Counted from the stretch's first letter, positions 942-24,134 are shown. The stretch is 61,776 nucleotides of DNA from Macrostomum lignano (GCA_002269645.1 NIVC01004072.1:1-61776), one strand, 5' to 3'. A program made the numbers and translations. Notes: generated by a model not told the origin, from the sequence alone.

Positions 942-1044
942 AGTAGTATACGTTTTTTTGACACAAAGCCGATTTCCTTATGGCGAAATACATAGTAAGT
1001 ACAGGCCCAAAAAAATGGCAGAGTCCGAAATTTCATGTGCACGC
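942..1044 (+). repeat. Left TIR of outer Polinton (~103 bp)
   Basis: Reverse complement of 24032-24134; identical over the first ~84 bp by visual alignment. Confidence 0.95.
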
Positions 1045-1810
1045 AGTCTGAAATTCCATGTGCACGCAGTCTGAAATTCCAAGTGCACGCTAAATATCTT
1101 TTACGCAACGTGATTATTCAGACGAATTGCATATCCACCTGTCCAAAATACAAGTAACCGATTCTAGCAATGGTGACACAAACACACTTCAAAGGATTCC
1201 ATTCAAGACAAATTTACTCCAAAGCTATTCACACATTTCAAGTGTTTTTGAAATATTGAAAACTTGTGAATATTATCACCCTTTTGAAGAAAGATAGTAA
1301 ATGATCTATTCTTGAGTGCCTATAGAATTTTTGCACCAACTTGAGCAGATGGTTTACAGATACTATGTCAACAACTGCGTCAACATGCTTCTTCTTTATA
1401 CTATATATATATACGAACACACTGACACAGAAAATATTAAATAACTTAAACCAAGTTTACATTATACTACTTGTTCAACTATACTTACATCTTAAGTGAA
1501 ATGAAGCGATCACGTCAGCAGGAATTGGCCGAGCGCTATGTTAAACAAGGTAAGATAATCACCTACTCTAGTTCAGTTTTCTTTTTTAGATTGACTGTTC
1601 GCTATAGTTTAGTTTCTAGATTGATTGTTAGTTCGGTTTCTGTTTAGACCGATCCTCTGTTTGTTCAGTCTCTAGATTGATTTTCTGCTAGTTCGGTTTC
1701 TGTTTAGACTAATACTCTGCTAGTTCAGAATTTCTAGATTGATTGTCTGCTAGTTCGGTTTCTGTTTAGACTGATTCTCTGCTAGTTCAGTTTCTATATA
1801 CATTGTATAC

Positions 1811-2362
1811 ATGCACCTATACCAAATTTCCCTCATCTTATCCATTATTATAGCATTCAAGAATGGTTTCTTCACGCGGCCACCTCCAGATCAGTGCAAA
1901 CGCATTTGCCACGACACCACCACATCCAATTCTGCTGCAAGAGCATCATATTCTACATCTCTCGCCAGAGTAACCTCGATTCATGTCGAGAGACAGACAA
2001 CTGAGCTAGATCGCATTTACACAAGAACTGATGTTATTCAGTCAATTAGGCAGCAATCGAACCCACGACCAACTGACCAACTGCAGTATGCACCACCACC
2101 ACCATCACCAACCAGCTACAATGACCCAACAAAGCAAACTTGCAGTAAGCCTACAAGTACCAAACCAACGACAGCAACTGAAACACCATCATCATCAATT
2201 GCTATTTCTACCCAAGTTCAACCGCTGCTAAACTCGCCAATTATTGTACAGAAGGACATCAAGTCTGTAAAAGTCTCTCAAATGAGCACAGGCTTCTACC
2301 AAGTAGAATTAGCAAAGACCTGTAATACAACTCAAGTATTTGAATATTGGGACCTATCTTAA
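1811..2362 (+). CDS. Hypothetical Ser/Thr/Pro-rich protein, possibly the second exon of a gene starting at ATG 1501
   Basis: 183-aa ORF with no recognisable motif. An upstream micro-exon MKRSRQQELAERYVKQ (1501-1549) ends at a gtaaga donor. Confidence 0.3.
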   Translation: MHLYQISLILSIIIAFKNGFFTRPPPDQCKRICHDTTTSNSAARASYSTSLARVTSIHVERQTTELDRIYTRTDVIQSIRQQSNPRPTDQLQYAPPPPSPTSYNDPTKQTCSKPTSTKPTTATETPSSSIAISTQVQPLLNSPIIVQKDIKSVKVSQMSTGFYQVELAKTCNTTQVFEYWDLS

Positions 2363-2619
2363 AAAGACATTTTTTCTAACTCTTCATAAAATTTTGCCAG
2401 CAATGTGTCCAAGTAATTGCTCTTTTAGTATATATCAAACAAGTCTGTAATCAATAATATAATCTCTATAAATTCATTATTCTAAAAAATTCTTTCAATT
2501 TTATTCGCCATTCATTGAAATTATTTAATTCAATATAAAGTCAATATCTTGTACAGTCATCATTAAACAAAAATTATTAATCCATGCAAATAATTTTTTT
2601 TTCATACGTTTCTTTAGCC

Positions 2620-3310
2620 ATGGTCTGGCTTTTGCCTCAACAGTATGATTTAGCTGTGGTCCAGCTTTTGCCTCAACAGTATGATTTAGCTGTGGTCCAG
2701 CTTTTGCCTCAACAGTTTTTAGCCGTGGTCCGGCTTTTTTGCCTCAGCAGTATGATTTAGCTGTGGTCTAGCTTAAAACTGCATCAACAGTGATTTAGCT
2801 ATAGTCCAGGCTTAACTACCTCAACGATGATTTAGCTATAGTCAAGGCTTAACTGTCTCAACAGTAATTTTAGCTGTTGTCCAGACTTAACTGCCTCAAC
2901 AGTGATTTTAGCTGTGGTCCAGGCAACTGTCTCAACAGGGATTTAGCTGTAGTCCGATTAGCTTAACTGTCCAGTTATTTAGCTGTGAGCCAAGCAGCAG
3001 CACCCGTCTCAACAGTGAGAATTAGCTATGGTCAGCTTTACCTCAACTGTGATTTGGCTGCTGTGGTCTAGCATAACTGACTCAACAGTAATTTTAGCTG
3101 TAGTCGTCCAGCTTAACCACCCGTCCAGTTTTATAACCATGGTCCAGCTTAACCACCGTCTCAACGTACAGCGATTTAGTCGTGGTCCAGCTTAACCGTC
3201 TCAACGTACAGTGATTTAGCCATGGGTCTAGTAGCAATTAACCGTATCAATAGTGATTTAGCCGTGGTCCAGCTTAACTGTCTCAACACAGTAATTTAGC
3301 TTAGTCCAAA
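2620..3310. repeat. Degenerate ~35-40-bp tandem array inside the outer Polinton
   Basis: Repeated GATTTAGCTGTGGTCCAGCTTAACTGTCTCAACAGT variants. Confidence 0.85.
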
Positions 3311-4011
3311 CAGCATTTGTGTGTCAACTGCACTGACTGCATGCGGTTATAGCAGCGGCAGTCATTATAGTCCCAACAAGCTGCGCGTCGCAGCATGATA
3401 GTGTAACTCTATATAGCTTCTGCTCAATATAGGACTGCAAAAGCTGAGTTACAACTATACCTTTTTCTGTTTGAAAAGTAACACTCTATATATAGGTTAC
3501 TCAAGCAATCTCTTGTCACCGTGCGAGCTAAAAAATTCCAACATGCAAGCAAAACTTTCAATAAATTAATTTCATAGCACCGCGTGCAGCTTATTTTTAC
3601 TCTAAAATCCAAGATTGCTAATTTTTCAAGTCGCAAAATATTTTAATTACATTCTACTTGAGAACAAAACCAATCTAATGAAGCAGCAACCAGCAGTCTT
3701 CTTATTAAACGCTTGCCATCGTGTTACTCTTGCAAATTTATAACTAGTGTGCCTAAGATTCATTAATTTTATTGTATAAAATATCAACCTACATTTGCGT
3801 AAAATTAGACCTAATCATGCAACCCACCCTAGAAACTTATGCCACCTTTGGCACGCAACAATGTCTTAATCAGCACGCAACAATTAAATTTGTTTACTAG
3901 TTCACAAACAGCATGCAAAGCTTGCTATAAATACAAGACCCGAAATGGTCAATTTTTCATGAGCTCAATCATTACAGCAAAAGAAATACTATATTCAATT
4001 GCTTGTAAGAC

Positions 4012-5210
4012 ATGGCAGCTTGCATCAAGACGGAGTCAATTGTACGCTCCGACTCGAGTCCGATTTTTTACGTTGGAGAGCAGTCTACAACCACGACTGG
4101 TTCGTCCTGCCAGTTTCGATCTATTGCGTGGAAACCATCAATCGAGTGTACAAAATGGTACCCAATTATATTGCAAACCAAGGCTCCAATGGAGCTTTTT
4201 CGTGGAATCGCAGAAAGGCCAGAGCTCGATCATCCGTCTTGCAGACACGACTCTCGCGACGCAGTAAGTGTCCAATTTCATCCAGACAGCTGCGATAAGG
4301 AACTCTTCCACTCTCTCCGGTGAGCACCATATTAAATTTATACAATTAATTTTAGGAAACTATATTCATAATTTATATAATGTTTTGCAGTCAAGTCGAA
4401 AAAGGTCTATCGGTCAAGTTGAACGAGATTCAAGATGCTCGACCCTTGGCACGACTAACAAAACCAGCTCATCAGCATGCTAACGACGTCCTCGAGTTTG
4501 TGCCTCAACAATGGCTGGCTATAAAGCCTGCTTACCCTTGTGCCACAATCAGGATCAGCAACGATCATCCACACGGGAAGGAGGTGTCCATTTCCGATTT
4601 CAAAGGTGTCAGCGGTACCTACCAAATGACAGTGCAAGCAACGAGCTTGTATTGTCCAAAAGGCTGCCTCGTCTGGCGCATTACATTCGCTGTGCGCTCT
4701 CTGACACTCATAGAATCTTCCGACAACATGTTGCAGCGCCTCGACATGTTCAAGGGAGTGCTTGCACACCTACCCGCGACCAAGTCAGCAATTAGAAGCA
4801 GGAGTCCGTCCCCAACATCTACCTGTGAGCAAGAAGAAGCAAATGAACAAAGCCTGCAGAATTCAAGCCAGGTGACACCTGCCAAGTCACCTGCAAAGCG
4901 TCGGTCTACCACCACCGTATCGAAGAAGTCGACTACATCGAATGCAGCGCCAGCCTCTATTGAACCGCCGCCTAAAAAGCAAGTTCGAAAACGCAGCGGT
5001 GCAAAACAGCAAAACAATTCTGCCGAAGCTGGTGCAGATGGCACAGACTGGGTGGAGGCTCCACCAGCAAAGATCTTGGTGAGTACACCTGCCTCTGGAA
5101 CCAGGGTAGCGTCCAAGGAGACAGCATTTTTAAAGCGTGCTGCTGCGGACGCTACTACAGCTAGCGTGTCTTCATCGGACGACTCGTACAGCAGCTCTGA
5201 TGATGAGTAA
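4012..5210 (+). CDS. Two-exon gene (4012-4319, 4391-5210): probable OB-fold ssDNA-binding protein with basic linker and acidic C-terminal tail
   Basis: A phase-2 GT-AG intron (4320-4390) joins ORF 4012 to ORF 4380 in frame. The beta-rich segment YQMTVQATSLY...VWRITFAVRSL and the tail SSSDDSYSSSDDE resemble viral T7 gp2.5-type SSBs. The family assignment is inference. Confidence 0.5.
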
Positions 5211-5420
5211 CAAAATTTTTGACTAATTTTATCCAAGTTTTAACTAACTTATTCCACTATATTTATCAAATTTTTGGCTAGGGAAATATTATTTTTTAGG
5301 GAAAAGCTCAAAACATTTTTTGCTACTCCTTGTACGCTAACCAGGTTTTGTAATTTAATATTAGAATTTACGATAGTATAGTCATGTTTAACTTTTCTTA
5401 TTATTTATTTTCCGTTTTAG

Positions 5421-5978
5421 CGACTTGTCCTATTAATAGTTACTGCGAGTCTGAAGCTGCACCCGTTTGAAAAATTTGATTTAAAGCAGACCAAACAGAA
5501 GCTACAGACCAGAAACCGGTTTTGCAAACTATTCCTAAGCCGACCAACAATGCTAAAGACAATTTATTCAAATGCTAAAATCCAACTTTATCCAGCAGGA
5601 AAACTAACTATATATGGCTGTAAATCAAATTCTCAGATAGTCTCAGTTTTACGATTTATCAACGACACTATTAATTGTGTAGATTTTGATTCAGTAAAAA
5701 TTCAGAGCAGTACCTATGTCGGCTTTATTGGTCATCTTTGGCCAAAATTCGGTTTCTCTAGTCTAAAAAGATATGCAGGCTACTATTCGAATTATCTGGT
5801 TGGATACGATGCAGAAAATTTCCCACAAGCAGTTTCTGTTAGATCAGCATCAAAACCAAGGCTTTTTTGTAACATATTTTTTTCGAAAAAGTTTGTTATT
5901 ATGGGCGTTCAAAACACTCATGAATTGAATAATATTCTTAACCATGTCAAGGATTTTTTAATCTCTGTTAATAACTAA
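5421..5978 (+). CDS. TATA-box binding protein (TBP)-like protein
   Basis: Both TBP repeats are visible: LIVTASL...FDL...IQLYPAGKLTIYGCKS and YDAENFPQ...KPRLFCNIFFSKKFVIMGVQN. The frame stays open back to an acceptor ttttag at 5420, so an upstream exon is likely. Confidence 0.75.
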   Translation, partial: RLVLLIVTASLKLHPFEKFDLKQTKQKLQTRNRFCKLFLSRPTMLKTIYSNAKIQLYPAGKLTIYGCKSNSQIVSVLRFINDTINCVDFDSVKIQSSTYVGFIGHLWPKFGFSSLKRYAGYYSNYLVGYDAENFPQAVSVRSASKPRLFCNIFFSKKFVIMGVQNTHELNNILNHVKDFLISVNN

Positions 5979-6192
5979 ACTTAACAAGTAAACAATTGCT
6001 GTCAAATCGCAGTTGCGATGCATTCTTTTACAAACATTTTGTCTTTTTTTATTTATTTACCAATTGTTTTCTCTAATAGTAAACGTGTCAGCTATACCTA
6101 TAACTAACCAAATCATCATTTTTCTTACAGCCGCAAATGACAAACCGGATCATCTATTAATATTATGCTCGATACGCTCGTTGTCGAGCTAG

Positions 6193-6915
6193 GTGCACAC
6201 AATGCCGCGTGCACAATGCCAAATCTGCAGAAAAAAGTTCAGTAATCAAGCCGAGCTGCATGCTCACTCGCATGGTGCTTGTTTTTCACCGCAACGATTA
6301 CTGACCGGATCGCTGCAAAACCTGATCGAAAACCCACCAGATGGGTGGTCCATCGCTTTGCGCGAGTCAGCTCATCGTGGTCGGGTAAATTTTGTCGAAT
6401 TTACTCCCACTCTTGAACAACAAGGCAACAGCTCTGGCGAGTTACTTCCTGGCGAGTTGATTGCGTCTTTAAGAGAACCAATATTTAAAATATTGGAAAA
6501 AATTGGCTCACCCAGTTTATTAATAAGAGTCTGCTTTCACTTGAAAGTGACACTATTTCGACCGAAAACAGCAGCAGACGACAACGATGGCTCGAGCAGC
6601 GAAGAGATCATTTCGGTCTATTTTAATACCAACATTGCGACAATATCATTTGATGAGACGATTACAAACAGTGACATGCTGTTATCTCCCGAGGCCTACA
6701 ATGACTGGTTCGCACGCGTTATTAATCAGTTGTTAATAAAAATTGACAATTTTCAATCTCGAGGTAGTAATTGGCAATATAGAGCAATCGAGCAGCTAGA
6801 CTTGATGCTCTGCGTTTATCGCAAAAGCCATGCAAGCACACTGTCAACAAATACGTCCCACGGTGGTGTGGGGGCGGGCGGCGGCAGTGGTGGTGGTGGC
6901 GGCGGTGGTGGTGGT

Positions 6916-6947
<32 letters not shown>

Positions 6948-7290
6948 GCGCGGGGAGTCCGGTCCAGTCCGGTCCGGTCCAGTCCGGTCCGGTCTGGTTA
7001 AGCAGCAATCGTTTAAAGTTCCAGTCTCAATCGGTCGCAAAGCTGGAGCAGTACTGCTTCTAAAGCCGCACAGAGCAGTTTAAAGCATCAAGACTATTTA
7101 AGAGTCTTACACAAGCGACAACTTGTGTTTTCGCGCATACAGTCCATTCGTTCTCGAAAACAGAAAGTTTTTTTTGATGCAACAAAGAAAACTTGCACTA
7201 AGCTTCTTCGATACGAAGCGATCCTGGACAAGTTCAATTAATTCGCTACCCTTTGGACACTGGCACTTGGCTAATTAATTAACAATATGC
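6193..7290 (+). pseudogene. C2H2 zinc finger plus probable pPolB N-terminal region (terminal-protein / vOTU-start-like relic), truncated
   Basis: C2H2-like CQICRKKFSNQAELHAHSH. IDNFQSRGSNWQYRAIEQLDL resembles the GSGW motif at the N-terminus of Polinton pPolB. After two in-frame stops (7081, 7099) the same frame reads SDNLCFRAY, a D-x-x-C motif. No exonuclease or polymerase motifs follow. Confidence 0.55.
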
Positions 7291-7570
7291 TCTGATCTCT
7301 TTTGTTGTACAAAGTAATAGCATGCTATAGAAGACTGTAACCCATCATTAATTTTTTCATTGATCATTATTTACAATAAATAAATGATACCGGCATTCGT
7401 TTAAATTATAATTTTAGCACTTTTTTGTGTTTAATTATTTGAAAAAGTATATTTTTTATAGTTAGATTCTCAAGACTAAGCTTGTGTTTGTAGTAGACGT
7501 AAATGTAGTGCTATCGTTCATGTTTCAAGAAAAAAAACTTTTTTTTAAACTTTCAGCTACAAGAATCGAC

Positions 7571-8053
7571 ATGAATCCCGAGCAGCAGCAGCAACAACAA
7601 CTAACTGATCGTAAGCTTTTAGTTGAACGTCTATACGATTCGGCAACGATTCCGACCCGAAAAACTGTCGGGTCGATCGGGTATGATCTTTGCGCTGGCG
7701 TCGATGGTACCATTCCGGCCTACGAGTCCCGGAGTGTGCGAACCGGACTCAAAATTCGCTTACCGCCTGGTACCTATGGCAGGATAGCGGGACGTTCCAG
7801 CATGGCTCTGCACAGCTTATTTGTTGGCGGTGGCGTAATCGACCCCGACTATACTGGTGAAATCTGTATAGTCTTGTTTAATTACAGTCCGGAAGACTTT
7901 GAGTACTATGCCGGGCTCAGTATTGCACAACTGGTTCTGGAGCAGGCCGTGCTTGCTTCAGTCTATGTGACTGAAGCAGACAATTCGATTCGGATGATTG
8001 AGCCGCCGACCAAGCGGCGCGGCTTTGGCGGCTTTGGCAGCACTGGCCAATAA
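7571..8053 (+). CDS. dut: Trimeric dUTPase
   Basis: Motifs GYDL, GRIAGRSS, GGVIDPDYTGEI, IAQLV and RGFGGFGSTG are all present. Likely ATG at 7571 (the ORF track starts at 7484). Confidence 0.95.
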   Translation: MNPEQQQQQQLTDRKLLVERLYDSATIPTRKTVGSIGYDLCAGVDGTIPAYESRSVRTGLKIRLPPGTYGRIAGRSSMALHSLFVGGGVIDPDYTGEICIVLFNYSPEDFEYYAGLSIAQLVLEQAVLASVYVTEADNSIRMIEPPTKRRGFGGFGSTGQ

Positions 8054-8144
8054 GTATAATAATAATAATAAACTGATTTTTTTCTTTGGTGATTGGTGCA
8101 CTATGCGAGAGCTTTGTAAATACTATAAGCAATTTTAAAAATTT

Positions 8145-8588: not shown

Positions 8589-8590
8589 AA

Positions 8591-9280: not shown

Positions 9281-9337
9281 TATTATTATAAGCAAATTAT
9301 AAACTGTTGTCAATATTAGTTTGTGTTTTATTTCAAA

Positions 9338-10327: not shown

Positions 10328-10383
10328 TTTATAAGCAAAGATTAATTGTGTAATAGAAAATTTTGTGAATTTGTTTTGTAAGA

Positions 10384-10812
10384 ATGAGCGAACTAACAGA
10401 AAAAGGAAAACAAAATGCTCGCTCATTGTGTCAGTGTGCTTTTTTACTACAAATTGTTTATCGGCTAAAGCATCCAAAGCAGAGAAAAAGTTTTTTACAA
10501 ACACTTTCAGAGTCGGAGATACGATGTCTAGTAGACTTTCTGTTTAATATTATTAGTGGACGTATTAAAATTAGTAACTGTAACAAAAGACGACTTGAGA
10601 AGCATCGCAGATATATACGCCAGCTTTTGGAACAGAAGACTCCAATTACTGCAAAAAGGAAAATACTTGTCCAACACGGAGGATTTTTACCTTTTTTGGC
10701 TCCAATTATTGCCGCTCTACCTGCTATAAGCACTGCGCTTGGGATAACGTCTGGAGTAGTTGGTACCGCCGCGGGAGCAGCGAATTTAATACGATCAATT
10801 CAACGAAAGTAG
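10384..10812 (+). CDS. Small basic Polinton virion protein with QxGG-FL motif and hydrophobic C-terminus
   Basis: KRKILVQHGGFLPFLAPIIAAL motif, as commonly seen in small Polinton/adintovirus virion proteins. Lies within the structural module. Confidence 0.65.
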   Translation: MSELTEKGKQNARSLCQCAFLLQIVYRLKHPKQRKSFLQTLSESEIRCLVDFLFNIISGRIKISNCNKRRLEKHRRYIRQLLEQKTPITAKRKILVQHGGFLPFLAPIIAALPAISTALGITSGVVGTAAGAANLIRSIQRK

Positions 10813-10822
10813 TAGGAATATA

Positions 10823-11512
10823 ATGCGAACTAACGAGAGTAGTAGTTTTCAACGAATGTATCTAGTACCTGAATCTGTGTATCAATCTGCATGTCAAGGT
10901 GCAGAGCAAGGATCGTCACCAACTGCTGAGACACCTCGAAAAACTGAAGTTTTAGACGCACCGCAAGATGCTCTGGCAAAAAATATGGTGGAAATGAGAG
11001 ACCAAATGGATAACTTGGACAAGGAAATGGAAAAGGAGCCAAATTACACAGCTCAATTGAAACGAAGCAGATTGGAAGACAAACTTTTAAAATTGCGCAA
11101 AGTCTATCGCACTGGAGACGAGGACAATCTGTCACTTGTTCGCAAAGGGACTACTGTAAGAAGTTCATATGCCAGCGAATCAAGGGAAATTCCTAAAGTT
11201 TTTTTACCACGTTTCGAAGCTCTCGCTCAAAACCTATTTTCGGACATGGACAAGAATGCAGAACCAATGCTGGCTAATTTGACTGATGCCGAGATACAAG
11301 ATCTCATGGAATATGTTGTTCGAGACAGACCGCTTAAGCGACACGAGACTCAACCGCCTAGTGGACTAAAAACATTTTTAGACTTTCTTCGAAAACGTGG
11401 AATCGCAGCAAACCAAATCGGGCGTCATGTACGAAACGAGCTAATGTCTGCTCCAAAAACTGTTGCAAAGGAGGATCTTAGTCTGTTTGAAAATTATCAA
11501 ACACTGAATTAA
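10823..11512 (+). CDS. Conserved Polinton protein of unknown function
   Basis: 229-aa ORF between the small virion protein and integrase, with RMYLVP at the N-terminus and PSGLKTFLDFL...IG at the C-terminus. Confidence 0.55.
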   Translation: MRTNESSSFQRMYLVPESVYQSACQGAEQGSSPTAETPRKTEVLDAPQDALAKNMVEMRDQMDNLDKEMEKEPNYTAQLKRSRLEDKLLKLRKVYRTGDEDNLSLVRKGTTVRSSYASESREIPKVFLPRFEALAQNLFSDMDKNAEPMLANLTDAEIQDLMEYVVRDRPLKRHETQPPSGLKTFLDFLRKRGIAANQIGRHVRNELMSAPKTVAKEDLSLFENYQTLN

Positions 11513-11793
11513 GTTGTTTTAAAATTACAGATTACGTTTTAACAAAATTGATTCGAGCACTATAAGCTTTTTAAAAAGGTTAATTTTTTGTTTATGAAAA
11601 ATATATAGTTTAATAAGACAAACCATGTCATCTATCTTCCAAAAACTTTTGATTCGTCTCTGTGAGTTTTTTTGCATAAAATCTGAATGTGTGCCGTTTC
11701 TGGGAAAGGAGCACAACGAGGATACTGACGGAGATTCGATCGAGGCTTCGTTCTTTTGTTGCAACTGTCAAACGACTAGCATCAATCTAACTG

Positions 11794-12954: not shown

Positions 12955-12962
12955 CACATGAA

Positions 12963-13454
12963 TTGGGATTGCATGACGAAGAGAAGACTGTTGAAATGGA
13001 TCCTATTTTTGCTTTTTATTCTGGTCCGAATAGATCTGCTGAAGGTGGAGGTGGATATGGCATTCCTGTTTACGAAGGTTACGGTTTTTTGTCAAATTTG
13101 GCGGACAGATTGGTGTATCCTGTACTACGCAACGCAAAGAAAGATTTCTTGGATCGTGGTCTGGAGTATTTGAAAAGTGCGACAGCAAAAATTGGTATGG
13201 GTCGGAAGCGTCACTTGGACACAGAATCGAGCGAAGAGATGTTTAATACAACTGCAGTTTCGAGACCAAAGCGAAGGAAAAGAACCAGTGGAGTGGCTAT
13301 AAGCTTAGGAAAGAAGAAACGGCAAAAGAAACGACGAACAAGACAGTGTGGAAAGGGACGCGTGAACAAAAGAAAACGCAAGAAGACCGGTGGTATAGGA
13401 AAACGTCGAACTGCTACTGCAAGCAAGAAACTTTTTAGTCTGTTTGAAAAGTAG
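12963..13454 (+). CDS. Basic core/DNA-condensing-like protein (pVII-like position upstream of MCP)
   Basis: GGGGYGIPVYEGYG N-terminal motif and a very Arg/Lys-rich C-terminal half. Confidence 0.6.
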   Translation: MGLHDEEKTVEMDPIFAFYSGPNRSAEGGGGYGIPVYEGYGFLSNLADRLVYPVLRNAKKDFLDRGLEYLKSATAKIGMGRKRHLDTESSEEMFNTTAVSRPKRRKRTSGVAISLGKKKRQKKRRTRQCGKGRVNKRKRKKTGGIGKRRTATASKKLFSLFEK

Positions 13455-13455
13455 C

Positions 13456-14539
13456 ATGAACCATTTGCTTGGACCTGATATTGCTGCTCTTAAAAGTGAA
13501 TTGTCGCTATTTGATCAAAGTCCTGTTCAGTTTAGTGTTTTGGATAATCGATATACTAACATTCAACCGCAACATGGTATTACAAAAGGATCACCTATCG
13601 AATTTGAAGTTGTGCCTGCAGGCGATTTGTATTTGGATCTACAAGAAACTGTGCTCACGGTATGCTTCAGCGTTAGTGATAGTGAAGGTGAACCTATAGA
13701 TGCAACGAAAAATTTTGTTTGTTTGAATAATTTGGTTATTGGAACATTGTTTGAGGACGTTCAATTTACTATTGGCGATACTGTAGTTGAAGGTGGTAGT
13801 TTTATGTATCCATACAAGGCTATGCTTCTTACATTACTGGAATATGGACATACAGCTCAGAAGGCTGGTTTACTGCCGTGGGGGTTTTACAAGGATACAG
13901 CTGGTAAAATGAATGCAACAAGTGAAAACGATGGACGAACAAAGAGGCAGGCGCTCATTGCTAACAATAGGCGGTGCACTGTATCGGGGCCGTTATTCTT
14001 GGATTTGTTTCGTCAGCCTCGGTATCTACTATCAAAGACACCACTACGGATCAAGCTCATACCGGCAAAAAGTAAATTTGTCCTGAGCGGGTCAACATTA
14101 GAAGCTGGTGCGGTTTTAAAAGACTATGAGATCAAGTTTTTGCGTGCAGAACTACGATTGCGGTTTGTTCAACCCTCGCCGAGTGTTATCAGTGCACATG
14201 CTCATGGACTTAAAAGTCACAATGCATTATATCCGCACCGAAGTCTAAGCCTTGGTACGTTTACTATACCCCGAGGATCGTCTAGCCATACGCATGAAAA
14301 TTTGTTTCCTAGTGGGGTACCACGGCTTTTATTGATGGCAATCGTAAGCAACAAGGCATTCAATGGAAGCATGGACACAAATCCGTTCAACTTTGAGCAT
14401 GCAAATGTGAGCAGCATTGGTGTGTTTGTGAATGGAGACTCGGTACCATCGCGTCCGCTGCAGACAAACTTTGGAGATGATTGTGTGACAGAGTATAATT
14501 TTTTGCTACAACAGCTTGGAATCTATCTACAGGGACGAG
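13456..14539 (+). CDS. Major capsid protein (double jelly-roll), 5' part, interrupted by the nested element
   Basis: ELSLFDQSPVQ, PIEFEV, LYLDLQET, LFRQPRYLLS, NPFNFEHANV, typical of Polinton MCP. Prematurely stopped by TAA at 14545-14547 inside the insert. Confidence 0.93.
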
Positions 14540-15770
14540 ACTACTAAGGACTGGTAGATCCGCCCTTTTTGGAGGTGGGGTGGGTGTCAACCCTCCTCGC
14601 CTCTCATTGGCTGGCGCGCGCGCCGCAGGCGCGTGGCGCCATCCAGGCGCCAATTAGGCGCCCATGCCGCAGGCGCACCCTCCCGATATGTACCCCGATA
14701 TGTATGCCCTCCCTCCCGATATGTATGCCCACCCTCCCGATATGTACCCCGATATGTATGCCCTCCCTCCCGATATGTATGCCCTCCAGAGCAGCAGGCG
14801 CCCATGCTGCAGGCGCCCATGCCGCAGGCACCCCGAGTGTACACTCTCGCGATATGTACACTCTACCACTCTCCCGATATGTAAGATATCTAGTCAGCGA
14901 TATTAGGCTAGTGAAAACTACTTATAGTAGATGAAATTGCGTATATTTACATAAAAAGTAGATAAAACATATTGGTAGGTGTGAATAATGACGCATAATA
15001 CATATTGGACCATATGAGCAGCAAAAACACACAATGTAGGTGCATGGGCAGAAATAGACAAAGCAGGTACTGTAGGCGCTACATAGGTGGAAATACACAC
15101 AGTATATTGCACACACTCTAGATTCCAATTATGTAGGTGCATACATACACACAATGTAGGTGCAAATTGAGTATAATACAAGAAAATTACATAGCATATA
15201 ATGTAGGCGCATTTTAAACGATACATTTTTGCATAATAACCCGCAGGTACAAATTTCAGTGCATAGGATAAAATACACACACTGGAAGTTAAGTATAATA
15301 CAACATATGTATGCAAAATTAAGCATATAATGTAGGTGCAAAGTAAAATATCCAGCCCAGGATATTCGAGACACGCCCCCAGAGCCAGGGCCGGGGGATC
15401 CCAATGTACAGTGCGGGCGGAGTAACATAGAGAAATTCCTCCCCAGGGCCGGGGGATCCCAAGTACAGTTCAGGCAGAGAGCATTCCAATCCTCCCCAAA
15501 TGGGGGGTTATCAAGGACCCCTCACATTGCACAGGGCGGGCAGAATAACAGACCGCATACAAATAGGGGTTTTAGCGGATCCCAAGTACAGTGCGGTCCC
15601 GGGTGTCAAATGATGCCCCAATGTACAGTGGAGGTAGAGTAACAGACCGCATACAAAGAGAATTCCAGTCAAACTTTACAGCACCTCCCACGGGGCTTTA
15701 GTGGATCCCCAGAGGGTAGCTCTCCAAGTTGAGGGATCCCCCCGTGTGTTGCGAGGCCCAAGTACAATGC
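14540..15770 (+). repeat. Left TIR of nested element (~1.23 kb)
   Basis: Reverse complement of about 21641-22994. The mirrored spurious ORFs 14918-15316(-) and 22190-22552(+) are near identical. Confidence 0.93.
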
Positions 15771-15873
15771 GGGTGTAAAACCATTTTCATCCCCACGAGT
15801 CAAGGGATCCCAAGTGGGCACATAGGGGAATCCCAGGCAGGGAGGCGTAAAAAGACAGATCCTTATCTTTCAC

Positions 15874-18800
15874 TCACTCCCGAAAGCCATACGGGCGGCT
15901 AGCAGCCCCATACACCCTCTTAGTCATTACGCGCTGGAAAGTCTTGTCCATCTCGAGGGTCCGGATTGTACAGCTAGCCTTATCGCGCCTGAACTGGGCC
16001 TGGGGCAGGCGTACAGTCCCGCCGTGACGCAGAATTTCCTGCAGCTCGTCCTCGCGCTCGGAAATCTCGGGGGTGACTCTGATGCCCTTGCACTTGAGCA
16101 CCGAGTACAGCGACCCGTCGGGCTTCTCCACTAAGTACCGGTAGAGCTTGGGGCCTCCCGTGGTGAACTGTACCATGCGGCAGCCAGCAGGTACCTCGTC
16201 AGTCCACTGCCCCAAACTCGAACCGCCCGGAGGCTCGTACTCGCCCGGGGAGCAGCGGTATACAACCCTGGGAGAAGGAGGAGAATAAAGTGTTAAGGGG
16301 AGAAAGAGAGACAGAGACAGTGAAAAAATTACTTACGAATCGGTATCGGCGTAAATGACTCGGGTTCCTAGGCCCTCCAGAGCCTCGTAGAGTCGCAGCC
16401 GGGCGTGGGAGGTGGTGAAAACGCCAATAGGTACATTAGCGTACTTGAACGCCCGCTCGCCAGCACCGCCAAATCGGGGCTTGTACTCGAGCATCATGAA
16501 GCTCTCCCCAATTGGCTCGCACGACTTGACCTTGATCGAGGGTCGGTCAGGCGCTGCAGCCACGCCTCGTAGCTGTCCACAATCTCTGTGGAGGTCAGGT
16601 CGTCGCGCTGGCAGAATTTGCCCCAGAGCCTGCAGGGAAAAATAAATTTTTTTTTGTAAGTAGAAAAACACGGCCCCCACTGCAAGTAGAAAAAACTTAC
16701 GAGTTTAGAAAAATCTTGGCCACAAAGCGCAAGCCAGGATTCTCCTCCACCTTTTCCAGCCGGACGCCTTCGCGCTCGAAAAAGCTGGCCATGTAGGCAG
16801 CCTTGGCGTCCTCAGCCATCCCCGGCGAACCGCTAGACTCGGCTTTGAGCTTCAAAAAAGTGTTTACATAATCTGCAAACAGACCCGTGCGAGTCTCGGT
16901 CCAATAGGCCAGGGCATGAACTGACTGCAGCTTGTAACCCAACTGCAGGGCTTTGTGGAGCTCTGGGGTCGACCACGTGCCGCGGAGCATTCTCTCAGCG
17001 TCAGTGTGTGTACACTCGCTGCTGCACTGGGTCTCCATGCAGACGCGGCAGAGGCCGAAAACCAACTTCTTGTTAATCTTGGCGGGCAGTAGCGGGATGT
17101 GGAGATTGGTTGGCGGCAGAATTGACACCTCGGCGATGCCAAAATACCGGGCCAGCTGCAGCTCATCCAGTAGATGAGGCTCGGGGTGGTGTACCGGGTG
17201 CCCGACCGGGTACTTGTCAAACTTGTTGACAGTCGGGTAGAGCGACACCTAGGGGATAAGGATAAGATAAACTCAAACGCATGTCAACTGTGTGTGTACA
17301 AGTGTACAAACTTACCACATCCCGATAGCGCAGCTCTACAGTCTCGGTGGCCTCGGCGTGCGGGACAAAAGCCTCGGTACGGCCGCCAAACAGGGCTTCC
17401 TCCAGGCGAATAGGCTGCTGGACTGGCGCTCCCTCGTCCTGATAGTCGTGCTCCCACAGAACACGCACATTGTATGCAGTGGAGAGCAGCCGGGTGAAGC
17501 GCTCGGTCTCTTCATAAATTGCCCGCATTGGCTGGTTCTTGAGCGGGTGCAGCACGTCGCCGTTGGGGAAGCACTTGGGACAGCCATGGAAGAAACAGCC
17601 ATGAAACTGCAGCACTGTCCTGGTCTCTGGGTCGAAGCCGTCGACCTTACGGCCCATGGCGAAAGCCTCGCCGCCAGAATCGGCTGTCCTCAACCGGCCG
17701 CCAAACTCGGTTGCATTTAAATGTGCCAGCCAGCACCGCGCCTTGTGCGACTGTACATCCGATCGGCGGGAAATCACCCCAAGAGTGTTGGGCTCCATAA
17801 ACTTGGTGGTGAATACCGACATGGCCAAGCCCGCAATGGTGTTGGATTGGACAAATGCGTCCAGTCCGCAAATGTCCTTAATCAGGCGGGCATATTTCAG
17901 GCAGCCTTCCCGCAAAATTAACGTGTCCTGCAGGCAATAGTCCAGGTACGCCTTATTAAAATTAAACACCTGTCCCTCCTGCTTGGCCAGCCAGTCGGCG
18001 ATGGAGTCATGCTGCTTATTCTTCTTCCCGCCGTACATATCAATTGAGCAGTAGGGACCGACGTACCCCCAATTTTGAGGCTGATTGAACACGTGCGGGA
18101 AATCTCCTTTGGTCAGTTGGGTGCCCAAACCAAGCGCCTTTGGGAATTGCGCCAGACCAATAGGGATGAAATTGAGGCTGTCCTTGAAGGTGATCTTGTC
18201 GCACTTCATGTACATTAGGCGGCTGTTCTGGAAGATCACTTGCGGCTTCTTCTTGGCCAGTCCGTTGAGTAGGGCGCCGAGCAGGAGGAATGCGTCATAC
18301 GCAGAGCCATTGTGCGCAATTGCAATTGCCCCCTGCTTGAACACACTAGTCAGCCAGCAGTAAAAGGCATCGATAGAGTGCGGCCCAACCGAAACAAACT
18401 CTCGCATCCCACAGGCACAGTCATTGTGCGAGACACAGCTCGTAAAATCCAGCGCCAGATTGCGTCCCGCAATGCAATTGGCTGAGCTGTGTAGTCCCCC
18501 GCACGCGCTGCAGCGGGGCCTGGGGAAGAGTTTGGGACACGCCTCGCAGGAGGTGGCAGCCGTAACCAAGTGTACCCGGTGCTGCTTGTCAGAGTCCAAG
18601 TACGTCTCGAAATCATAGTAAACATACGGGGCGCTAGACTCTTTGGCTTTGGGCGGGGTGACAAAGCACTCGTGGGTGGCAGTTTCGTCGTACTGCTTGC
18701 AGACTGGGCACTTGGCATAACCACACTGATGCTCAGGGGGCTGGCCTACTTTTAGTTCTTCTAGATAGCCACACGTGCCGCAAACGTGGACCGAATCACA

Positions 18801-20677
18801 GCGCGATCTGCCCGCCTTATTCTTGCGCTTGTGATTTTCTAGGCACTGAGCATTATAGCAATTTAGCCCGCAATCATGGCATCTTACATATGCGCGGTTT
18901 GCCTTACAGTTGGAGCCCGGAGTCTTGCATGTACTGCAGGCATCAGCGCACTTGTGCTTCTCATAATTGCAGTCGTAGGCCATCTCGCACTTGGGGCAGT
19001 AGTGATCGGAGCCGAAAAACGCAGGCAGCTTGGTGACCACATTAAAGTGCTGCTCGACCAGGTGTAGGTGCAGAATCTCGGTGCCAGGCAGGTTGAAGAT
19101 GCACCTGTTGGCCTCCTCTGCGCGGTACACGCGTACACCAAAATCGCGCCCCGGATGCAGCCGGTTCAGGGCACGGATCGCTTCGGGCAGTGCATCCACG
19201 CCGAAAGGACCAGCCTGCGAGACGGTTTGAAGAGTCTGTGTGGAGGGTAAAATATTTCTTTTAGTGTTCCTTATCGTAAAATTTCTTATCAGAAAATTTT
19301 AGTATTCCATGATACTGTGTAAAAATCTTATCAGAAAATATATCTTTTAGTATTCCATGATACTGTGTAAAAATCTCATCAGAAAATATTAGTATTCCAT
19401 GATACTGCGTAAAAATTCTTATCAGAAAAATACTAGAAACTTACCGTGTAGAGGCCTGCCTCGATTTGTAGCTCAGCCACCAGCTTAGTCTGCGTGGGCG
19501 AATTGGCCTTGATCGTGCGCCACACCTTCTCGGTGATGGACTTGGCCACGAATTGCAGGTAGGCGCAGGCCACGACCAGAGCGCGCAGCAGGCATCTCTT
19601 GTCCGAGTTGGTGATGCGGACATAGTGCTTTGAAAAAGCGTGCCTCTCTTCTAGATGCCTGTTCTCGAGAGCACATCCACCTCGAGGTACCCAGGCTTTT
19701 AGCAGACGGATAGAAAAGTTGCTCGACAGTACGCTTGCGTCTGACTGCACAATCTTGTCAATGTGCTTAAACAACAATTCAGCCGTCATGCGGGCTGCAC
19801 GCACCGGGGGAGTGTGGGCCGCTTTGAGCATGTTGTCGCTCTCGAATTTCGCGGCCATAAAGTCATCACCAGCCAAATCTTGCTTGAAAACTTCGAGCAT
19901 GTCGGCAAACACCTCCCGCAAATCTTCGGTGTTGGTAATACGCACCACATACTCGACACCCTTTGCCCTAAACTTGGGCAGGTCGCGTTGATTATCCAGC
20001 CGGGCCGTAAAACCTGCATGGGGGAATGGGGGAGTGTGAGTCAGCCAGGGTCTGTGTGGGAAATGGGGGGCGGGATAACTCACCCGGTCCGGTAACAGAT
20101 TCCGGCTGTGTTGGCGGGACAAACGCGTCTGAAAAAACACAAGGAGATAAAAAACCAGAAGAATCTGTCATTTTCCTGGCCCCAGCGTGTTTCCCCGCCC
20201 TAGCCCCAGCAATTTCTTAACAGAGTTTACTCTGCTGTCCCCGCAGCAACTCTCTGCAATTTCTTATCTGCACCCCCGCTGCAGCCTGTCGCAGCAGTCT
20301 TTGTTTACTCACCCCTGCAACTCTCTGTCGCAGCAATTTGCACCCCAGCTGCAGCCTGTCTGGACAACACCCCCTAGCAGCAATTTCTTATCAGCACACA
20401 CCCGGCTGTAACTTGTCTAGCCCTCCCCTGCAACTCTCTGTTACAGACCCTGCCGCAGCACCCCACCCTAGCAACTCCAGTCTAGACCCCTGCAGCTGTC
20501 GCAGCAGTCTTTGTTGTTTACTCTGCGGTCCCACAGACCCTGCAGCTGCTGCTGCTGCTCAGCCCCTACCCCCACCCTAGCAACTACAGTCTAGACAGAA
20601 ATTAATTAAAACTTACCATAAAGACGTTGCCTCTTGTCAGCCAGAAAAGCAGTTGCGTTGGCGCTGCGTTTAGCCAT
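15874..20677 (-). CDS. Protein-primed family B DNA polymerase (pPolB), 7 exons, ~1276 aa after one 1-nt correction
   Basis: Exons 20617-20677, 20084-20128, 19445-20013, 17316-19235, 16701-17248, 16337-16629 and 15874-16267, all GT-AG and phase compatible. vOTU-like SDKRCL...EQHF. ExoI YYDFET, ExoII AHNGSAYD, ExoIII YCLQDT. Vsr-like insert KVDGFDP...FHGCFFHGCPKC. Motif A DV|VSLYP, motif B KIFLNS|LWGKF, motif C YADTDS|VVY, then KCKGI. Exon 6 is 293 nt, one short, with a frameshift at GGG 16540-16542. Confidence 0.95.
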
Positions 20678-20751
20678 TTTGCAAACAGAGAGCGTGAGAG
20701 AGCGAGCGGAGAGAGAAGGATTATCTCTCTACCCTGGCTCTGGGGGGTCTG

Positions 20752-20874
20752 TATATATACTAAAAAATCTGCTCAGCTCGCCTGTTATTGGTCAATCGCC
20801 AAAAACCAACCAAAATCATCAAAAATCACCCCCAAAATCACCACCCACCCCACCCTCCATCCGGGGGTATATAA
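20752..20874. promoter_or_regulatory. Putative bidirectional Pol II promoter between pPolB and the PC4-like gene
   Basis: TATATATA at 20752-20759 (~75 bp upstream of the pPolB ATG), TATATAA at 20868-20874 (~50 bp upstream of ATG 20924), and ATTGG between them. Confidence 0.6.
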
Positions 20875-20923
20875 GGCGCTGCACGGCTGTTAGAGAGCTC
20901 TCTGCTGCTGCTGCTGCTAAATC

Positions 20924-21421
20924 ATGTCTTCTATCTCTCTATACGAAAACTTTGTGGCGCGGAAGCCCACATTTGAAACTGAACACAACTTGATTGAAAT
21001 TCGGCGTCTCTACACCAACGAGGCCGGAGTGTGGAAGGACGGCTTCCCTGCAATCTACTTGAGCGAGCCAGAGTGGAAGAAGCTCGAAGCTGCGCGCCCT
21101 GACCTGGAGGCTGCTGCCCGCCTTCACGTGAACAAGCGGGTCCTGTTGGGCAATTTCAAGGCAGTTGAAGCTTCGCGAGGGAGGATCCGTTTGCTGCGCA
21201 ATTGGCTCAATCAGGACCCAAAGTTTAATTGGCGCTACACGATCGAATTCACGCCTGAACTGTGGCGCAGGATGTTTGCCGCCCGTTTGGACAAGCTCTT
21301 CAAGCCGGCACCTGAGGCACCCCCTCCAGCCAAGCGAGTCAAGACAGAGGACAATCTGCAGGACTGCCTTGACAGCATCAAACCCTACCCTTGGGGAAAT
21401 CTGTTTGACGAGGGTTGCTAA
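20924..21421 (+). CDS. Tandem PC4-like ssDNA-binding protein
   Basis: Two PC4-like repeats: IEIRRLY...GVWKDGFPAIYLSEPEWKKL and IRLLRNW...YTIEFTPELWRRM. A possible further GT-AG intron starts at 21463. Confidence 0.65.
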   Translation: MSSISLYENFVARKPTFETEHNLIEIRRLYTNEAGVWKDGFPAIYLSEPEWKKLEAARPDLEAAARLHVNKRVLLGNFKAVEASRGRIRLLRNWLNQDPKFNWRYTIEFTPELWRRMFAARLDKLFKPAPEAPPPAKRVKTEDNLQDCLDSIKPYPWGNLFDEGC

Positions 21422-21640
21422 TTGAGGCGTGCCGCATCCGTACAGCGCGAACCCGATTTTTGGTAAGCTTAATTTCATATAAATCGTATATAAATTACAT
21501 ATAATCTGTCTACATTGAATATTTTTTACTTTGACAGATGTTTCGAGAGCGCTGATGAGGAGGAGACTGCCCTGGCTGAAGATCGCGCTCGAGTTTGACT
21601 GATAAGGGAATTTCTCTTTGTACTCTGTTACTCTCTGCAT

Positions 21641-22994
21641 GCACTGTACTTGGGCCTCGCAACACACTGGGGGGATCCCTCAACTTGGAGAGCTACCCTC
21701 TGGGGATCCACTAAAACCCCGTGGGAGCTGCGGTAAAGTTTGACTGGAATTCTCTTTGTATGCGGTCTGTTACTCTACCTCCACTGTACATTGGGGCGGG
21801 ATCCTTCCTCATTTAACACCCCGGAGCGCACTGTGCATTGGGGGGCGGGATTCCTTCATCATTTGACACCCGGGAGCGCACTGTACTTGGGATCCGCTAA
21901 AACCCCTATTTGTATGCGGTCTGTTATTCTGCCCGCCCTGTGCAATGTGAGGGGTCCTTGATAACCCCCATTTGGGGAGGATTGGAATGCTCTCTGCCTG
22001 AACTGTACTTGGGATCCCCGGCCCTGGGGAGGAATTTCTCTATGTTACTCCGCCCGCACTGTACATTGGGATCCCCCGGCCCTGGCTCTGGGGGCGTGTC
22101 TCGAATATCCTGGGCTGGATATTTTACTTTGCACCTACATTATATGCTTAATTTTACATACATATGTTGTATTATACTTAACTTCCAGTGTGTGTATTTT
22201 ATCCTATGCACTGAAATTTGTACCTGCGGGTTATTATGCAAAAATGTATCGTTTAAAATGCGCCTACATTATATGCTATGTAATTTTCTTGTATTATACT
22301 CAATTTGCACCTACATTGTGTGTATGTATGCACCTACATAATTGGAATCTAGAGTGTGTGCAATATACTGTGTGTATTTCCACCTATGTAGCGCCTACAG
22401 TACCTGCTTTGTCTATTTCTGCCCATGCACCTACATTGTGTGTTTTTGCTGCTCATATGGTCCAATATGTATTATGCGTCATTATTCACACCTACCAATA
22501 TGTTTTATCTACTTTTTATGTAAATATACGCAATTTCATCTACTATAAGTAGTTTTCACTAGCCTAATATCGCTGACTAGATATCTTACATATCGGGAGA
22601 GTGGTAGAGTGTACATATCGCGAGAGTGTACCCTCGGGGTGCCTGCGGCTCGGTAGAGTGTACACTCGGGGTGCCTGCGGCTCGGTAGAGTGTACACTCG
22701 GGGTGCCTGCGGCATGGGCGCCTGCAGCATGGGCGCCTGCTGCTCTGGAGGGCATACATATCGGGAGGGTGGGCATACATATCGGGGTACATATCGGGAG
22801 GGTGGGCATACATATCGGGAGGGAGGGCATACATATCGGGGTACATATCGGGAGGGTGCGCCTGCGGCATGGGCGCCTAATTGGCGCCTGGATAGCGCCA
22901 CGCGCCTGCGGCGCGCGCGCCAGCCAATGAGAGGCGAGGAGGGTTGACACCCACCCCACCTCCAAAAAGGGCGGATCTACCAGTCCATAGTAGT
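21641..22994 (-). repeat. Right TIR of nested element (~1.35 kb)
   Basis: Reverse complement of 14540-15770, with extra internal repeat copies at about 21795-21855 and 22630-22700. Confidence 0.93.
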
Positions 22995-23000
22995 GACGAG

Positions 23001-23239
23001 ATATTGGATTTAATATGCTGGATTACGCCAATGGTTACTCAATTTTTGCATTCAGTCTTGGAAGTGAACCTGGTGTCGGACGGGGAGTGCAACTGTATAA
23101 GGAAGGAAATGTAAAACTAGAGTTACGCTTCAATGCTGCAACTAGTACCGTGTACAACGTCATATTTGGAGGTATATTTGACAAGCAACTGCAACTGACT
23201 GAACTTCGCGACATTGTTCCTGGCACAGTATGGAAGTAA
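23001..23239 (+). CDS. Major capsid protein, 3' part
   Basis: DIGFNMLDYANGYSIFAFSL...GNVKLELRF...IFDKQLQL continues the MCP frame once the insert and one TSD copy are removed. Confidence 0.92.
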
Positions 23240-23793
23240 TTGATTCTATCCTAGATCGTGGTGTAACAGATCGCTTCCTTCGCAATGTTGTATCGAAATT
23301 GTGCGCACATTTTTTAAATGTTGTATTTCTTGGTGTTTTTCCTCAAAACTTTGTTGGTGGACTTAGACGCTTACCTTTAGACGGTAAAGACTATTTTTTT
23401 ATCGTTAATACTGACGTCTCCAACCTGCCCGGAAAACATTGGGTATGCGTTTGGGTTTATGGTCATCGAGCAGGTCGCGGTAGCAAACGACTTGGTGAAT
23501 ATTTTGATTCTCTTGGTCTAGTACCATTGCCAAGAATAGCAAAATGGCTAGGAAAAGAATGTGGAAATTCGAAAAATTGGTGTTATAGTCGCTTTGCTAT
23601 CCAAGACCCACAGAGTGGAAGTTGTGGATTTTGGGTAATTTTTTATATTTTTCATAAGTTGACTACCAGAGGAAACCTAGAGTGTTTTATTCGAAGCGTT
23701 TTAAAACGGAATATAATTCGCACTGGTTCGTTTCGATACTTGTATGCTAAATTACGCAATTTTGTTTTACGAGTGCTGCCTCAATATTTGTAA
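23230..23793 (+). CDS. Adenain-like cysteine (maturation) protease
   Basis: VNTD...GKHWVC (His), EYFDSLG (Asp) and IQDPQSGSCG (Gln/Cys). Confidence 0.92.
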   Translation: MEVIDSILDRGVTDRFLRNVVSKLCAHFLNVVFLGVFPQNFVGGLRRLPLDGKDYFFIVNTDVSNLPGKHWVCVWVYGHRAGRGSKRLGEYFDSLGLVPLPRIAKWLGKECGNSKNWCYSRFAIQDPQSGSCGFWVIFYIFHKLTTRGNLECFIRSVLKRNIIRTGSFRYLYAKLRNFVLRVLPQYL

Positions 23794-24031
23794 ACTCGCT
23801 AATTTGTGCGTCAAATTGTGTTTGTATCTAGTTGAAATATACAATACTGCTTGAAAAGAAGAATTTAAATGCGTTAAGTTATACGCGAAATAAGCTTTGT
23901 GTCAAATTGAATTTTGGTTGGGCTTGTAATTAGCTGCATTCATTGCGGATAGAATTTAGGTGGATAGACAGGTGGTGTTTGCGTAAAAGTGATTCAGCTA
24001 ATTGGTTAATTCATTGCGTAAAAGCTAGTTT

Positions 24032-24134
24032 GCGTGCACGGCAAATTTCAGACTCTGCCATTTTTTTGGGCCTGTACTTACTATGTATTTCGCCATAAGG
24101 AAATCGGCTTTGTGTCAAAAAAACGTATACTACT
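24032..24134 (-). repeat. Right TIR of outer Polinton
   Basis: Reverse complement of 942-1044. Confidence 0.95.

Follow-up and report, generated by a model that had tools for sequence, protein, structure and literature searches.

The nested locus at positions 942 to 24,134 of a 61,776-nucleotide stretch of DNA from Macrostomum lignano (GCA_002269645.1 NIVC01004072.1:1-61776, analysed over its full length and in the following called the window) raises the question whether two Polinton/Maverick derivatives, one inserted into the other, share more than their position. The outer element carries an integrase and virion genes and has no protein-primed DNA polymerase B (pPolB) domain, the inner element carries pPolB and neither integrase nor capsid gene, and the initial annotation had read this arrangement as a division of labour between a replicon and a virion. 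In our view, and with a probability of roughly 80%, the locus is a transposon-in-transposon nest of two defective derivatives that belong to different lineages and whose complementary gene content is coincidental. A Polinton with its replicon and virion functions split between two elements would have been a new genome strategy. At this locus it is unsupported, given the interrupted capsid gene, the deletion in the outer polymerase gene and the different termini and polymerase clades of the two elements.

As initially annotated, the two elements are separately delimited, each by terminal inverted repeats (TIRs) and by a perfect 6-bp target-site duplication (TSD) (Table 1); the chance of each of these perfect hexamers is 1/4096. 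Without the inner element and one copy of its TSD, the outer element measures 14,732 bp (about 14.7 kb). The TIRs of the inner element are composite, with blocks that are 98-100% identical (94-100% for individual inverted-repeat blocks) and tandem repeats that differ in copy number between the two arms. The edges of the inner element are also fixed independently by homology, as the uninterrupted orthologue P0042 from a Logan contig (442 amino acids (aa), 66% identity) aligns across both junctions: its residues 1-364 correspond to positions 13456-14541 and its residues 363-442 to positions 22997-23236, and in comparison with it the two halves of the interrupted gene continue in frame with an overlap of two codons. 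An AlphaFold (AF2) model of P0042, calculated from an alignment of 20 sequences, reached a pLDDT of 84, and its best Foldseek matches were the major capsid proteins (MCPs) of PBCV-1, Sputnik and mavirus (E-values of about 1e-17 to 1e-16, probability 1.0). With the fold taken from this 66%-identical orthologue, the interrupted open reading frame (ORF) is predicted to be a member of a double jelly-roll MCP family, and the alignment places the inner element within the major capsid gene of the outer one. The insertion splits this gene and thereby destroys the very function that the inner element was supposed to exploit. Of the outer gene set described initially, the integrase, the ATPase motifs and, with a weak Pfam match, the protease are retained, and the MCP has to be struck from the list of intact genes.

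The base-exact nature of both junctions, each with its 6-bp duplication, also bears on the possibility that the nest is an assembly artefact, i.e. a chimeric join of repeats. The genome is rich in repeats, and the arrangement of a second M. lignano element, L009, which is described below, is suspiciously palindromic. However, the in-frame continuation of the capsid gene relative to P0042 speaks against a chimeric join, and so does A0A1I8GML4 (P0079), a UniProt model from a different assembly with 99-100% identity to the locus, which joins host exons outside the outer element to polymerase exons of the inner element. Since this model spans both the host flank and the inner exons, the nested arrangement is present in an independent assembly, and an artefact is scarcely credible. 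Among the exon products of the inner polymerase, the largest shares 97% identity with the M. lignano protein A0A1I8J2P7 (UniProt), and judging from these identities the nest resides in the genome of M. lignano or a very close relative.

The outer element is flanked on both sides by exons of a host gene of the GH18 type (chitinase domain), at 310-661 and 24543-26071 (both on the minus strand). Pfam reports Glyco_hydro_18 at 24543-24872 with an E-value of 3.3e-5, below the cut-off, and GH18-like motifs were recognised by eye in 310-661. Since exons of this type occur on either side, the outer element sits in an intron of that gene, in antisense orientation. The fusion of upstream GH18 exons with inner pPolB exons in A0A1I8GML4 looks like a chimeric annotation, and automatic gene models that merge host and transposon exons in this way matter for the annotation of M. 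lignano.

Is the outer element polymerase-less by design? A Pfam scan of all six frames of positions 942-7500 (stops read as X) detected no DNA_pol_B_2 or other replicase domain and returned a TBP domain and a weak zinc finger only. The remainder of the outer element is filled by ORFs that were scanned as well, none of which matched a polymerase, and tblastn with the inner polymerase found nothing in the outer element. Thus, the initial statement that pPolB is missing holds at the level of domains, but remnants of the gene are still present between the TBP-like ORF and the dUTPase gene (Table 1). What remains there was shaped by one large internal deletion, of about 3 kb when compared with L009, and by one frameshift in the residual C-terminal part. 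A homologue search with the C2H2-type ORF at the N-terminal end returned nothing, and an exhaustive HMMER search led to the M. lignano protein PAA86599.1 (P0067), which matches both ends of the remnant (E=3e-22 and 1e-13). Its N-terminus corresponds to the C2H2 ORF, its C-terminus to a short stretch just downstream of this ORF, in two frames, and its middle, with DTDS and KxY motifs, can be aligned with the C-terminal portion of pPolB in L004 and L005 (E of about 1e-10), two related metagenomic elements whose pPolB is Pfam-positive. In the whole outer element, a profile of the C-terminal part of pPolB matched this spot alone (E=3e-8 and 8.5e-8).

The genomic locus of P0067 is L009 (M. lignano NIVC01000272.1), a paralogous element with the same gene order: a homologue of the 276-aa accessory ORF, a TBP-like ORF, a C2H2 ORF (42% identical over 296 aa, the whole length), an 852-aa pPolB ORF (DNA_pol_B_2, E=2.5e-19) with a C-terminal exon, dUTPase, the PLA2-like protein and the ATPase. 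Because both ends of the gene persist in the outer element and L009 has a pPolB in the same slot, we conclude from this comparison that the outer element lost its polymerase core by one internal deletion and is not polymerase-less by design. The initial annotation had itself pointed out that an intact pPolB in other outer copies would make this copy a simple deletion; in substance this is the situation encountered, with remnants here and the 852-aa pPolB in the paralogue. The deleted form is not confined to one place either. The gene model P0065, whose three main exon matches show 99-100% identity (93% in a repeat stretch of 15 aa), has the same polymerase-less junction and then enters a retrotransposon of the long terminal repeat (LTR) type that is missing from the window, so that at least two loci or haplotypes carry the deletion.

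Some further matches were obtained along the way. The HMMER search also returned P0066, a 5,994-aa repeat protein from Chlorobium, which was discarded as a spurious repeat match. A likeness of the C2H2 ORF to the N-termini of invertebrate pPolB proteins, including the first exon of the inner polymerase, found no support by BLASTP, phmmer or a small profile. In the pPolB ORF of L009 (10627-13182), an Endonuclease VII domain (PF02945, E=1.1e-6, above cut-off) lies just N-terminal to the polymerase domain.

The inner element was initially credited with a full pPolB. The Pfam match (two exon products hit DNA_pol_B_2, with E=4.5e-17 and 4.9e-13) and the complete set of motifs (Exo I-III, motifs A, B and C (YADTDS), and KxY) bear this out; the gene is not a single ORF, however, but is divided into at least five exons and contains one frameshift. 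Its transcription and splicing are deduced from the sequence together with automatic gene models. The four polymerase-like ORF pieces are exons, with a GTAAGT donor, a tract rich in pyrimidines and a YAG acceptor at each junction, and a further upstream exon is joined likewise across a 208-nt intron holding 48-nt tandem repeats. Joining of the exons restores the intron-split motifs DxxSLYP (motif A) and KxxxNSxWG (motif B). At the site of the frameshift in this assembly, 16 gene models of the family read straight through. An array of 48/90-nt tandem repeats occupies 19249-19429, in the first mapped intron of the gene.

Beside the polymerase gene and the TIRs, the inner element comprises only 1.5 kb with a single 165-aa ORF. 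This ORF gave no rve match, and there is no room for an integrase or a capsid gene, so that the initial statement that both are missing from the inner element is confirmed. Queries with the virion genes and the integrase of L005 matched only the outer ATPase, MCP, protease and integrase in the window and nothing inside the inner element. The assignment of the 165-aa ORF as a PC4-like single-stranded DNA-binding protein was abandoned, as its sequence matches stay below threshold (Pfam PC4 E=0.034, 14.1 bits with a cut-off of 25; PDB 4usg E=0.35) and a single-sequence AF2 model was unusable (pLDDT 37.7).

There are clear differences between the two elements in their ends. The outer element begins with AGTAGT and the inner one with ACTACT (AGTAGTATACG versus ACTACTAAGGAC), and no further similarity between their TIRs was seen by eye. 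The inner termini are thus 5'-AC...GT-3', and 5'-AG...CT-3' is reportedly typical of Polintons. L009 (3174-19174) has the termini AGTAGTAATAGG at both ends and shares the heptamer AGTAGTA with the outer element, at which the similarity between their TIRs ends. Due to the different termini, nothing ties the inner element to the integrase of the outer one, which is an unlikely donor. The polymerases differ as well. No BLAST similarity was found between the inner-type polymerases and those of the outer/L009/L005 type, and a tblastn search of the window with the L005 polymerase missed the inner polymerase as well as the outer remnant, the clades being too distant. By these comparisons, M. lignano is host to two Polinton polymerase clades, and the inner and the outer element fall into different ones.

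These results can be held against the idea of a bipartite polintovirus, or of a helper and its satellite, in which the outer element (virion and integrase) and the inner element (polymerase) would be co-adapted and complement each other in trans. Superficially the gene contents are complementary, both elements have 6-bp TSDs, a second polymerase-less outer copy exists in P0065, and the inner family is abundant, all of which such a system would account for. However, the two functions are not mutually intact, since the outer MCP gene is disrupted by the inner element and the inner pPolB is frameshifted; the polymerase loss of the outer element is a deletion with flanking remnants in a slot where L009 keeps the gene; and the termini differ. 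Moreover, an MCP search returned no M. lignano protein, in contrast to 37 UniRef90 clusters from this species (at least 47 distinct gene models) for the inner polymerase, which gives no sign of matched abundance. The spliceosomal introns of the inner element and its GC content (48-56%, compared with about 38-41% across most of the outer element) also point to a separate history. A bipartite or satellite system is therefore very unlikely.

If the inner element did not co-evolve with the outer one, where does it come from? In 41 hits of the inner family (precomputed Pfam) and in a Pfam scan of 10 long models, no rve domain was detected. In nine other gene models, the region of the 165-aa ORF recurs beside the polymerase with its DNA 98-100% conserved, so that this side of the inner architecture is recurrent. 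P0021, the outer integrase and the 165-aa ORF of the inner element were also looked up as exact proteins, and none of them gave a match. Outside M. lignano, relatives of this polymerase occur at 45 metagenomic loci, and these loci were examined with local profiles made from the outer proteins and their relatives, with the key calls confirmed by Pfam. L036 combines an inner-type polymerase with protease, MCP, a penton-like protein, integrase and ATPase; L037 and L039 combine it with protease and MCP; in L033 and L034 an ATPase adjoins the polymerase. In L054, an rve and chromodomain integrase lies beside polymerase fragments, the best segment of which is the most similar one found (49% identity). 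Since the polymerases of relatives adjoin integrase, ATPase, capsid and protease genes, the inner lineage is, as far as gene neighbourhoods tell, not normally polymerase-only, and the inner element is a reduced derivative of it. The initial annotation had foreseen such a derivative of an ordinary Polinton for the case that inner copies carried their own integrase and capsid, and at the level of the lineage this was observed among these metagenomic loci. In Lamellibrachia (L003) and Leptopilina (L008), homologues of the MCP lie on fragments or as solitary genes, contexts that are uninformative on the linkage to a polymerase.

The reduction could have taken place before or after the insertion. 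The inner element might have integrated as a complete autonomous Polinton and lost integrase, capsid, ATPase and protease genes in place, as the linkage of its relatives' polymerases to those genes and the occurrence of large deletions and arm duplications in this genome (the outer element itself and L009) would allow. But such a loss would have had to spare both complete 1.2-kb TIRs (98-100% identical) and the perfect TSD; no remnant of the lost genes was detected in 20140-21641; and the 98-100% identity of the segment from the polymerase to the right TIR in nine models suggests that the short form itself has been copied. Loss in place is thus unlikely, and this copy apparently integrated already without an integrase. 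Because it has intact TIRs and a perfect TSD of 6 bp, the length characteristic of Polinton rve integrases, and no integrase of its own, an integrase acting in trans is the most likely agent of its insertion, and the initial proposal of a mobilisation in trans by a Polinton-type integrase remains the simplest explanation.

For the preferred reading of a nest of unrelated defective derivatives, the history of the locus is as follows. An adintovirus-like Polinton integrated into an intron of the GH18-type host gene with a 6-bp TSD; it brought along an rve integrase with a chromodomain, an ATPase, a double jelly-roll MCP, a protease, dUTPase and PLA2-like and Adeno_PX-like proteins. Its polymerase gene lost, before or after this integration, the exonuclease and the polymerase core through one internal deletion that left the two ends. 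The 8.46-kb inner element, with its long TIRs, intron-containing pPolB and small ORF, then integrated into the outer capsid gene and produced its own TSD, probably with the help of an rve integrase that an autonomous Polinton from its own lineage provided in trans. The inner element itself may represent one terminal gene block in an enlarged inverted repeat, a form of defective genome known from protein-primed linear replicons, and a fragment that had regained the origin-bearing terminus at both ends would stay replicable. L009 may exemplify such a rearrangement in the other lineage, as an analogy and not as a proof: its inverted arms are about 4.5 kb and about 3.1 kb long, the arm junction truncates the ATPase gene, and integrase, MCP and protease are missing. 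L009 has no TSD, its flanks being GATGTA and AAGGGT. The left one (3168-3173) resembles the outer TSD GATGTG (936-941), which may have arisen by chance or may reflect a preference of the integrase lineage for certain target sites.

Several points weigh against this history. An autonomous element of M. lignano that has the termini ACTACT and could have supplied the integrase was not encountered. Only the synteny with L009 and one NCBI gene model (P0067) tie the C2H2 ORF to the polymerase. L009, in turn, could have come about by recombination, by defective replication or as a palindrome of the assembly, and is of limited value as a model for the origin of the inner element. The integrase-less architecture of the inner family elsewhere is deduced solely from gene models that include the polymerase and one neighbouring segment. 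The gene models P0022, P0025, P0026 and P0027 share a low-complexity Ser/Ala-rich N-terminal extension that is missing in this copy, so either members of the family differ beyond the 165-aa ORF region or these four models read through TIR repeats. Finally, an indel error of the assembly could account for the one frameshift seen in the inner pPolB.

Table 1 Coordinates of the outer and inner elements and of their features in the window
Feature	Position	Strand	Remarks
Outer element	942-24134		104-nt TIRs, TSD GATGTG
Outer TSD GATGTG, left copy	936-941		read directly; identical hexamer at 24135-24140
Outer TSD GATGTG, right copy	24135-24140		
Outer left TIR	942-1045		104 nt; terminus 5'-AGTAGTATACG
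Outer right TIR	24031-24134		96% complementary to left TIR over 104 nt
Non-coding tandem-repeat arrays, outer left arm	1605-3300		32/62-nt and 36-40/75-nt units (TRF)
Accessory ORF, 276 aa, S/T-rich C-terminus	4380-5210	+	32% identity to L009 counterpart, E=5e-31
TBP-like ORF, 142 aa	5550-5978	+	Pfam TBP E=2.3e-7, above cut-off; 47% to same-position L009 homologue
Outer pPolB remnant	6193-7275	+	N-terminal C2H2-type ORF and short C-terminal (thumb-end) fragment
dUTPase	7484-8053	+	Pfam dUTPase E=1.8e-29
PLA2-like protein, 147 aa	8145-8588	+	Pfam Phospholip_A2_4 E=3.4e-9; 56% to L009 homologue
Packaging-type ATPase, 231 aa	8585-9280	+	Walker A GPSNSGKT, Walker B VVVDD
Putative penton/minor capsid ORF, 334 aa	9323-10327	+	positional homology
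Adeno_PX-like small basic protein	10384-10812	+	Pfam Adeno_PX E=2.3e-6, above cut-off; L001 orthologue matches likewise
229-aa ORF	10823-11512	+	kept in L001; 100% identical stretch in P0065 (second locus)
Integrase, rve core and C-terminal chromodomain	11794-12954	+	intact reading frame; D90/D152/E186 present
163-aa basic ORF	12963-13454	+	same position in L001/L002
Predicted major capsid protein gene, double jelly-roll, 442-aa family	13456-23239	+	one insertion (inner element); both pieces otherwise open
Inner TSD GACGAG	14534-14539 (left), 22995-23000 (right)		read directly
Inner element	14540-22994		8,455 bp; terminus 5'-ACTACTAAGG
Inner left TIR	14540-~15770		~1.23 kb; 21/33/54-nt and 15-nt tandem repeats inside (TRF)
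Inner pPolB gene	15874-20140	-	at least 5 exons, 4 GT-AG introns; one frameshift
165-aa ORF	20924-21421	+	opposite strand to inner polymerase
Inner right TIR	~21641-22994		~1.35 kb; additional 32-nt and 50-nt repeat copies compared with left arm (TRF)
Adenain-like cysteine protease, 187 aa	23230-23793	+	weak Pfam Peptidase_C5 match, E=0.026

The recognisable genes of the outer element are all located on the plus strand. The Logan contig L001 is collinear with it from the 334-aa ORF through the protease, and L004-L006 are partly collinear. In the repeat arrays of the left arm (1605-3300), no ORF of at least 80 aa and no Pfam domain in six frames were found, and the 276-aa accessory ORF has no Pfam match. 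The ATPase gave nothing above the Pfam threshold and is homologous to the ATPase of L005 (E=1.4e-22), which carries a faint Adeno_IVa2 match. Homologues of the 334-aa ORF are the 342-aa ORF between integrase and MCP in L005 (E=5.5e-10) and the first ORF of L001. The integrase exceeds the Pfam cut-off for rve slightly (33.7 versus 32.6 bits), has a Chromo match in addition, and aligns over its full length to the L005 integrase (E=5e-43). The protease is homologous to the 168-aa ORF that follows the MCP in L005 (E=1.3e-7) and to a 190-aa ORF of L001, and a member of this protease family in L036 attains the cut-off for Peptidase_C5.

Outside the nest, the window contains a satellite array with a period of 22 bp at about 46094-48000 (a 300-nt reference recurs at least 74 times in shifted register), which yields spurious ORFs at 46290-47583. 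Three further inverted-repeat pairs, at 27421-31436 (arms of 124 and 95 nt, 3.6-3.8 kb apart), 32957-33976 (261-nt arms, 97%, 498 nt apart) and 34265-34466 (87-nt arms, 28 nt apart), probably represent further DNA transposons or elements resembling miniature inverted-repeat transposable elements. Fragments of host genes are spread across 41410-42207 (+), 49249-53630 (+) and 57512-60766 (-), and include an exon with an RRM domain, exons for the PK barrel and C-terminal domains of pyruvate kinase, and ORFs with C2H2 zinc fingers.

The locus illustrates the range of Polinton decay in a single animal, with a polymerase-deleted copy at two or more loci or haplotypes, the rearranged L009 and a polymerase-only family that is abundant and has spliceosomal introns inside catalytic motifs. 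What is new here lies in the inner family itself. Possibly, although the odds are rather against it, this family propagates in polymerase-only form, as semi-autonomous parasites of the integrase, and perhaps of the capsids, of full-length Polintons. If so, there would be a replicon-only class of satellites among Polintons, unrelated to the particular outer element that hosts this copy, which keep an intron-bearing and probably functional pPolB and have shed the integrase and all virion genes. In the limited literature searched (Repbase not included), no multi-copy polymerase-only Polinton derivative was described, and no paper on Polintons in Macrostomum was found.

Compared with known systems, the outer element resembles Polintons/Mavericks of the adintovirus type, animal elements that encode pPolB, an rve integrase, a double jelly-roll MCP, a penton protein, a packaging ATPase and an adenain-like protease, in its TIRs, 6-bp TSD, rve and chromodomain integrase, putative ATPase, double jelly-roll MCP, putative protease, Adeno_PX and PLA2; PLA2 and Adeno_PX-like proteins are said to be features of adintoviruses. 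It differs from them in that its polymerase gene is reduced to two terminal remnants and its MCP gene is interrupted by another element. In the butterfly Pieris mannii, more than one copy exists of adintovirus-type polintons that lack polB, have TIRs and carry nested transposable elements (Igolkina et al., bioRxiv 10.1101/2025.02.07.637071). The outer element and its second copy in P0065 are like them in the loss of polB, the nested element and the presence of several copies, whereas the polintons of P. mannii enclose a LINE or gypsy element and the outer element encloses another Polinton derivative. Mobility after the loss of polB is backed in the butterfly by a presence/absence polymorphism (bioRxiv 10.1101/2025.02.07.637071), and the question how such polintons are copied, raised in the same study, is also posed by the present locus, where derivatives occur that are missing one or the other hallmark enzyme. 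The inner element can be compared with the capsid-less Polintons, in which MCP, protease and ATPase were lost in concert within families, as part of a continuum between viruses and transposons (Krupovic, Bamford & Koonin 2014, PMC4028283). Like these, it has lost the whole morphogenetic module; its integrase is gone as well, and pPolB and one small ORF are all that remains.

Protein-primed linear replicons such as adenovirus and linear plasmids give rise to defective genomes with enlarged inverted termini. The inner element, with its 1.2-kb TIRs, and L009, with arms of 3-4.5 kb, are similar to such genomes in that a terminal gene block is enclosed in a long inverted repeat. However, the defective genomes of adenovirus and linear plasmids are extrachromosomal, whereas the inner element is integrated into a chromosome and flanked by a TSD.

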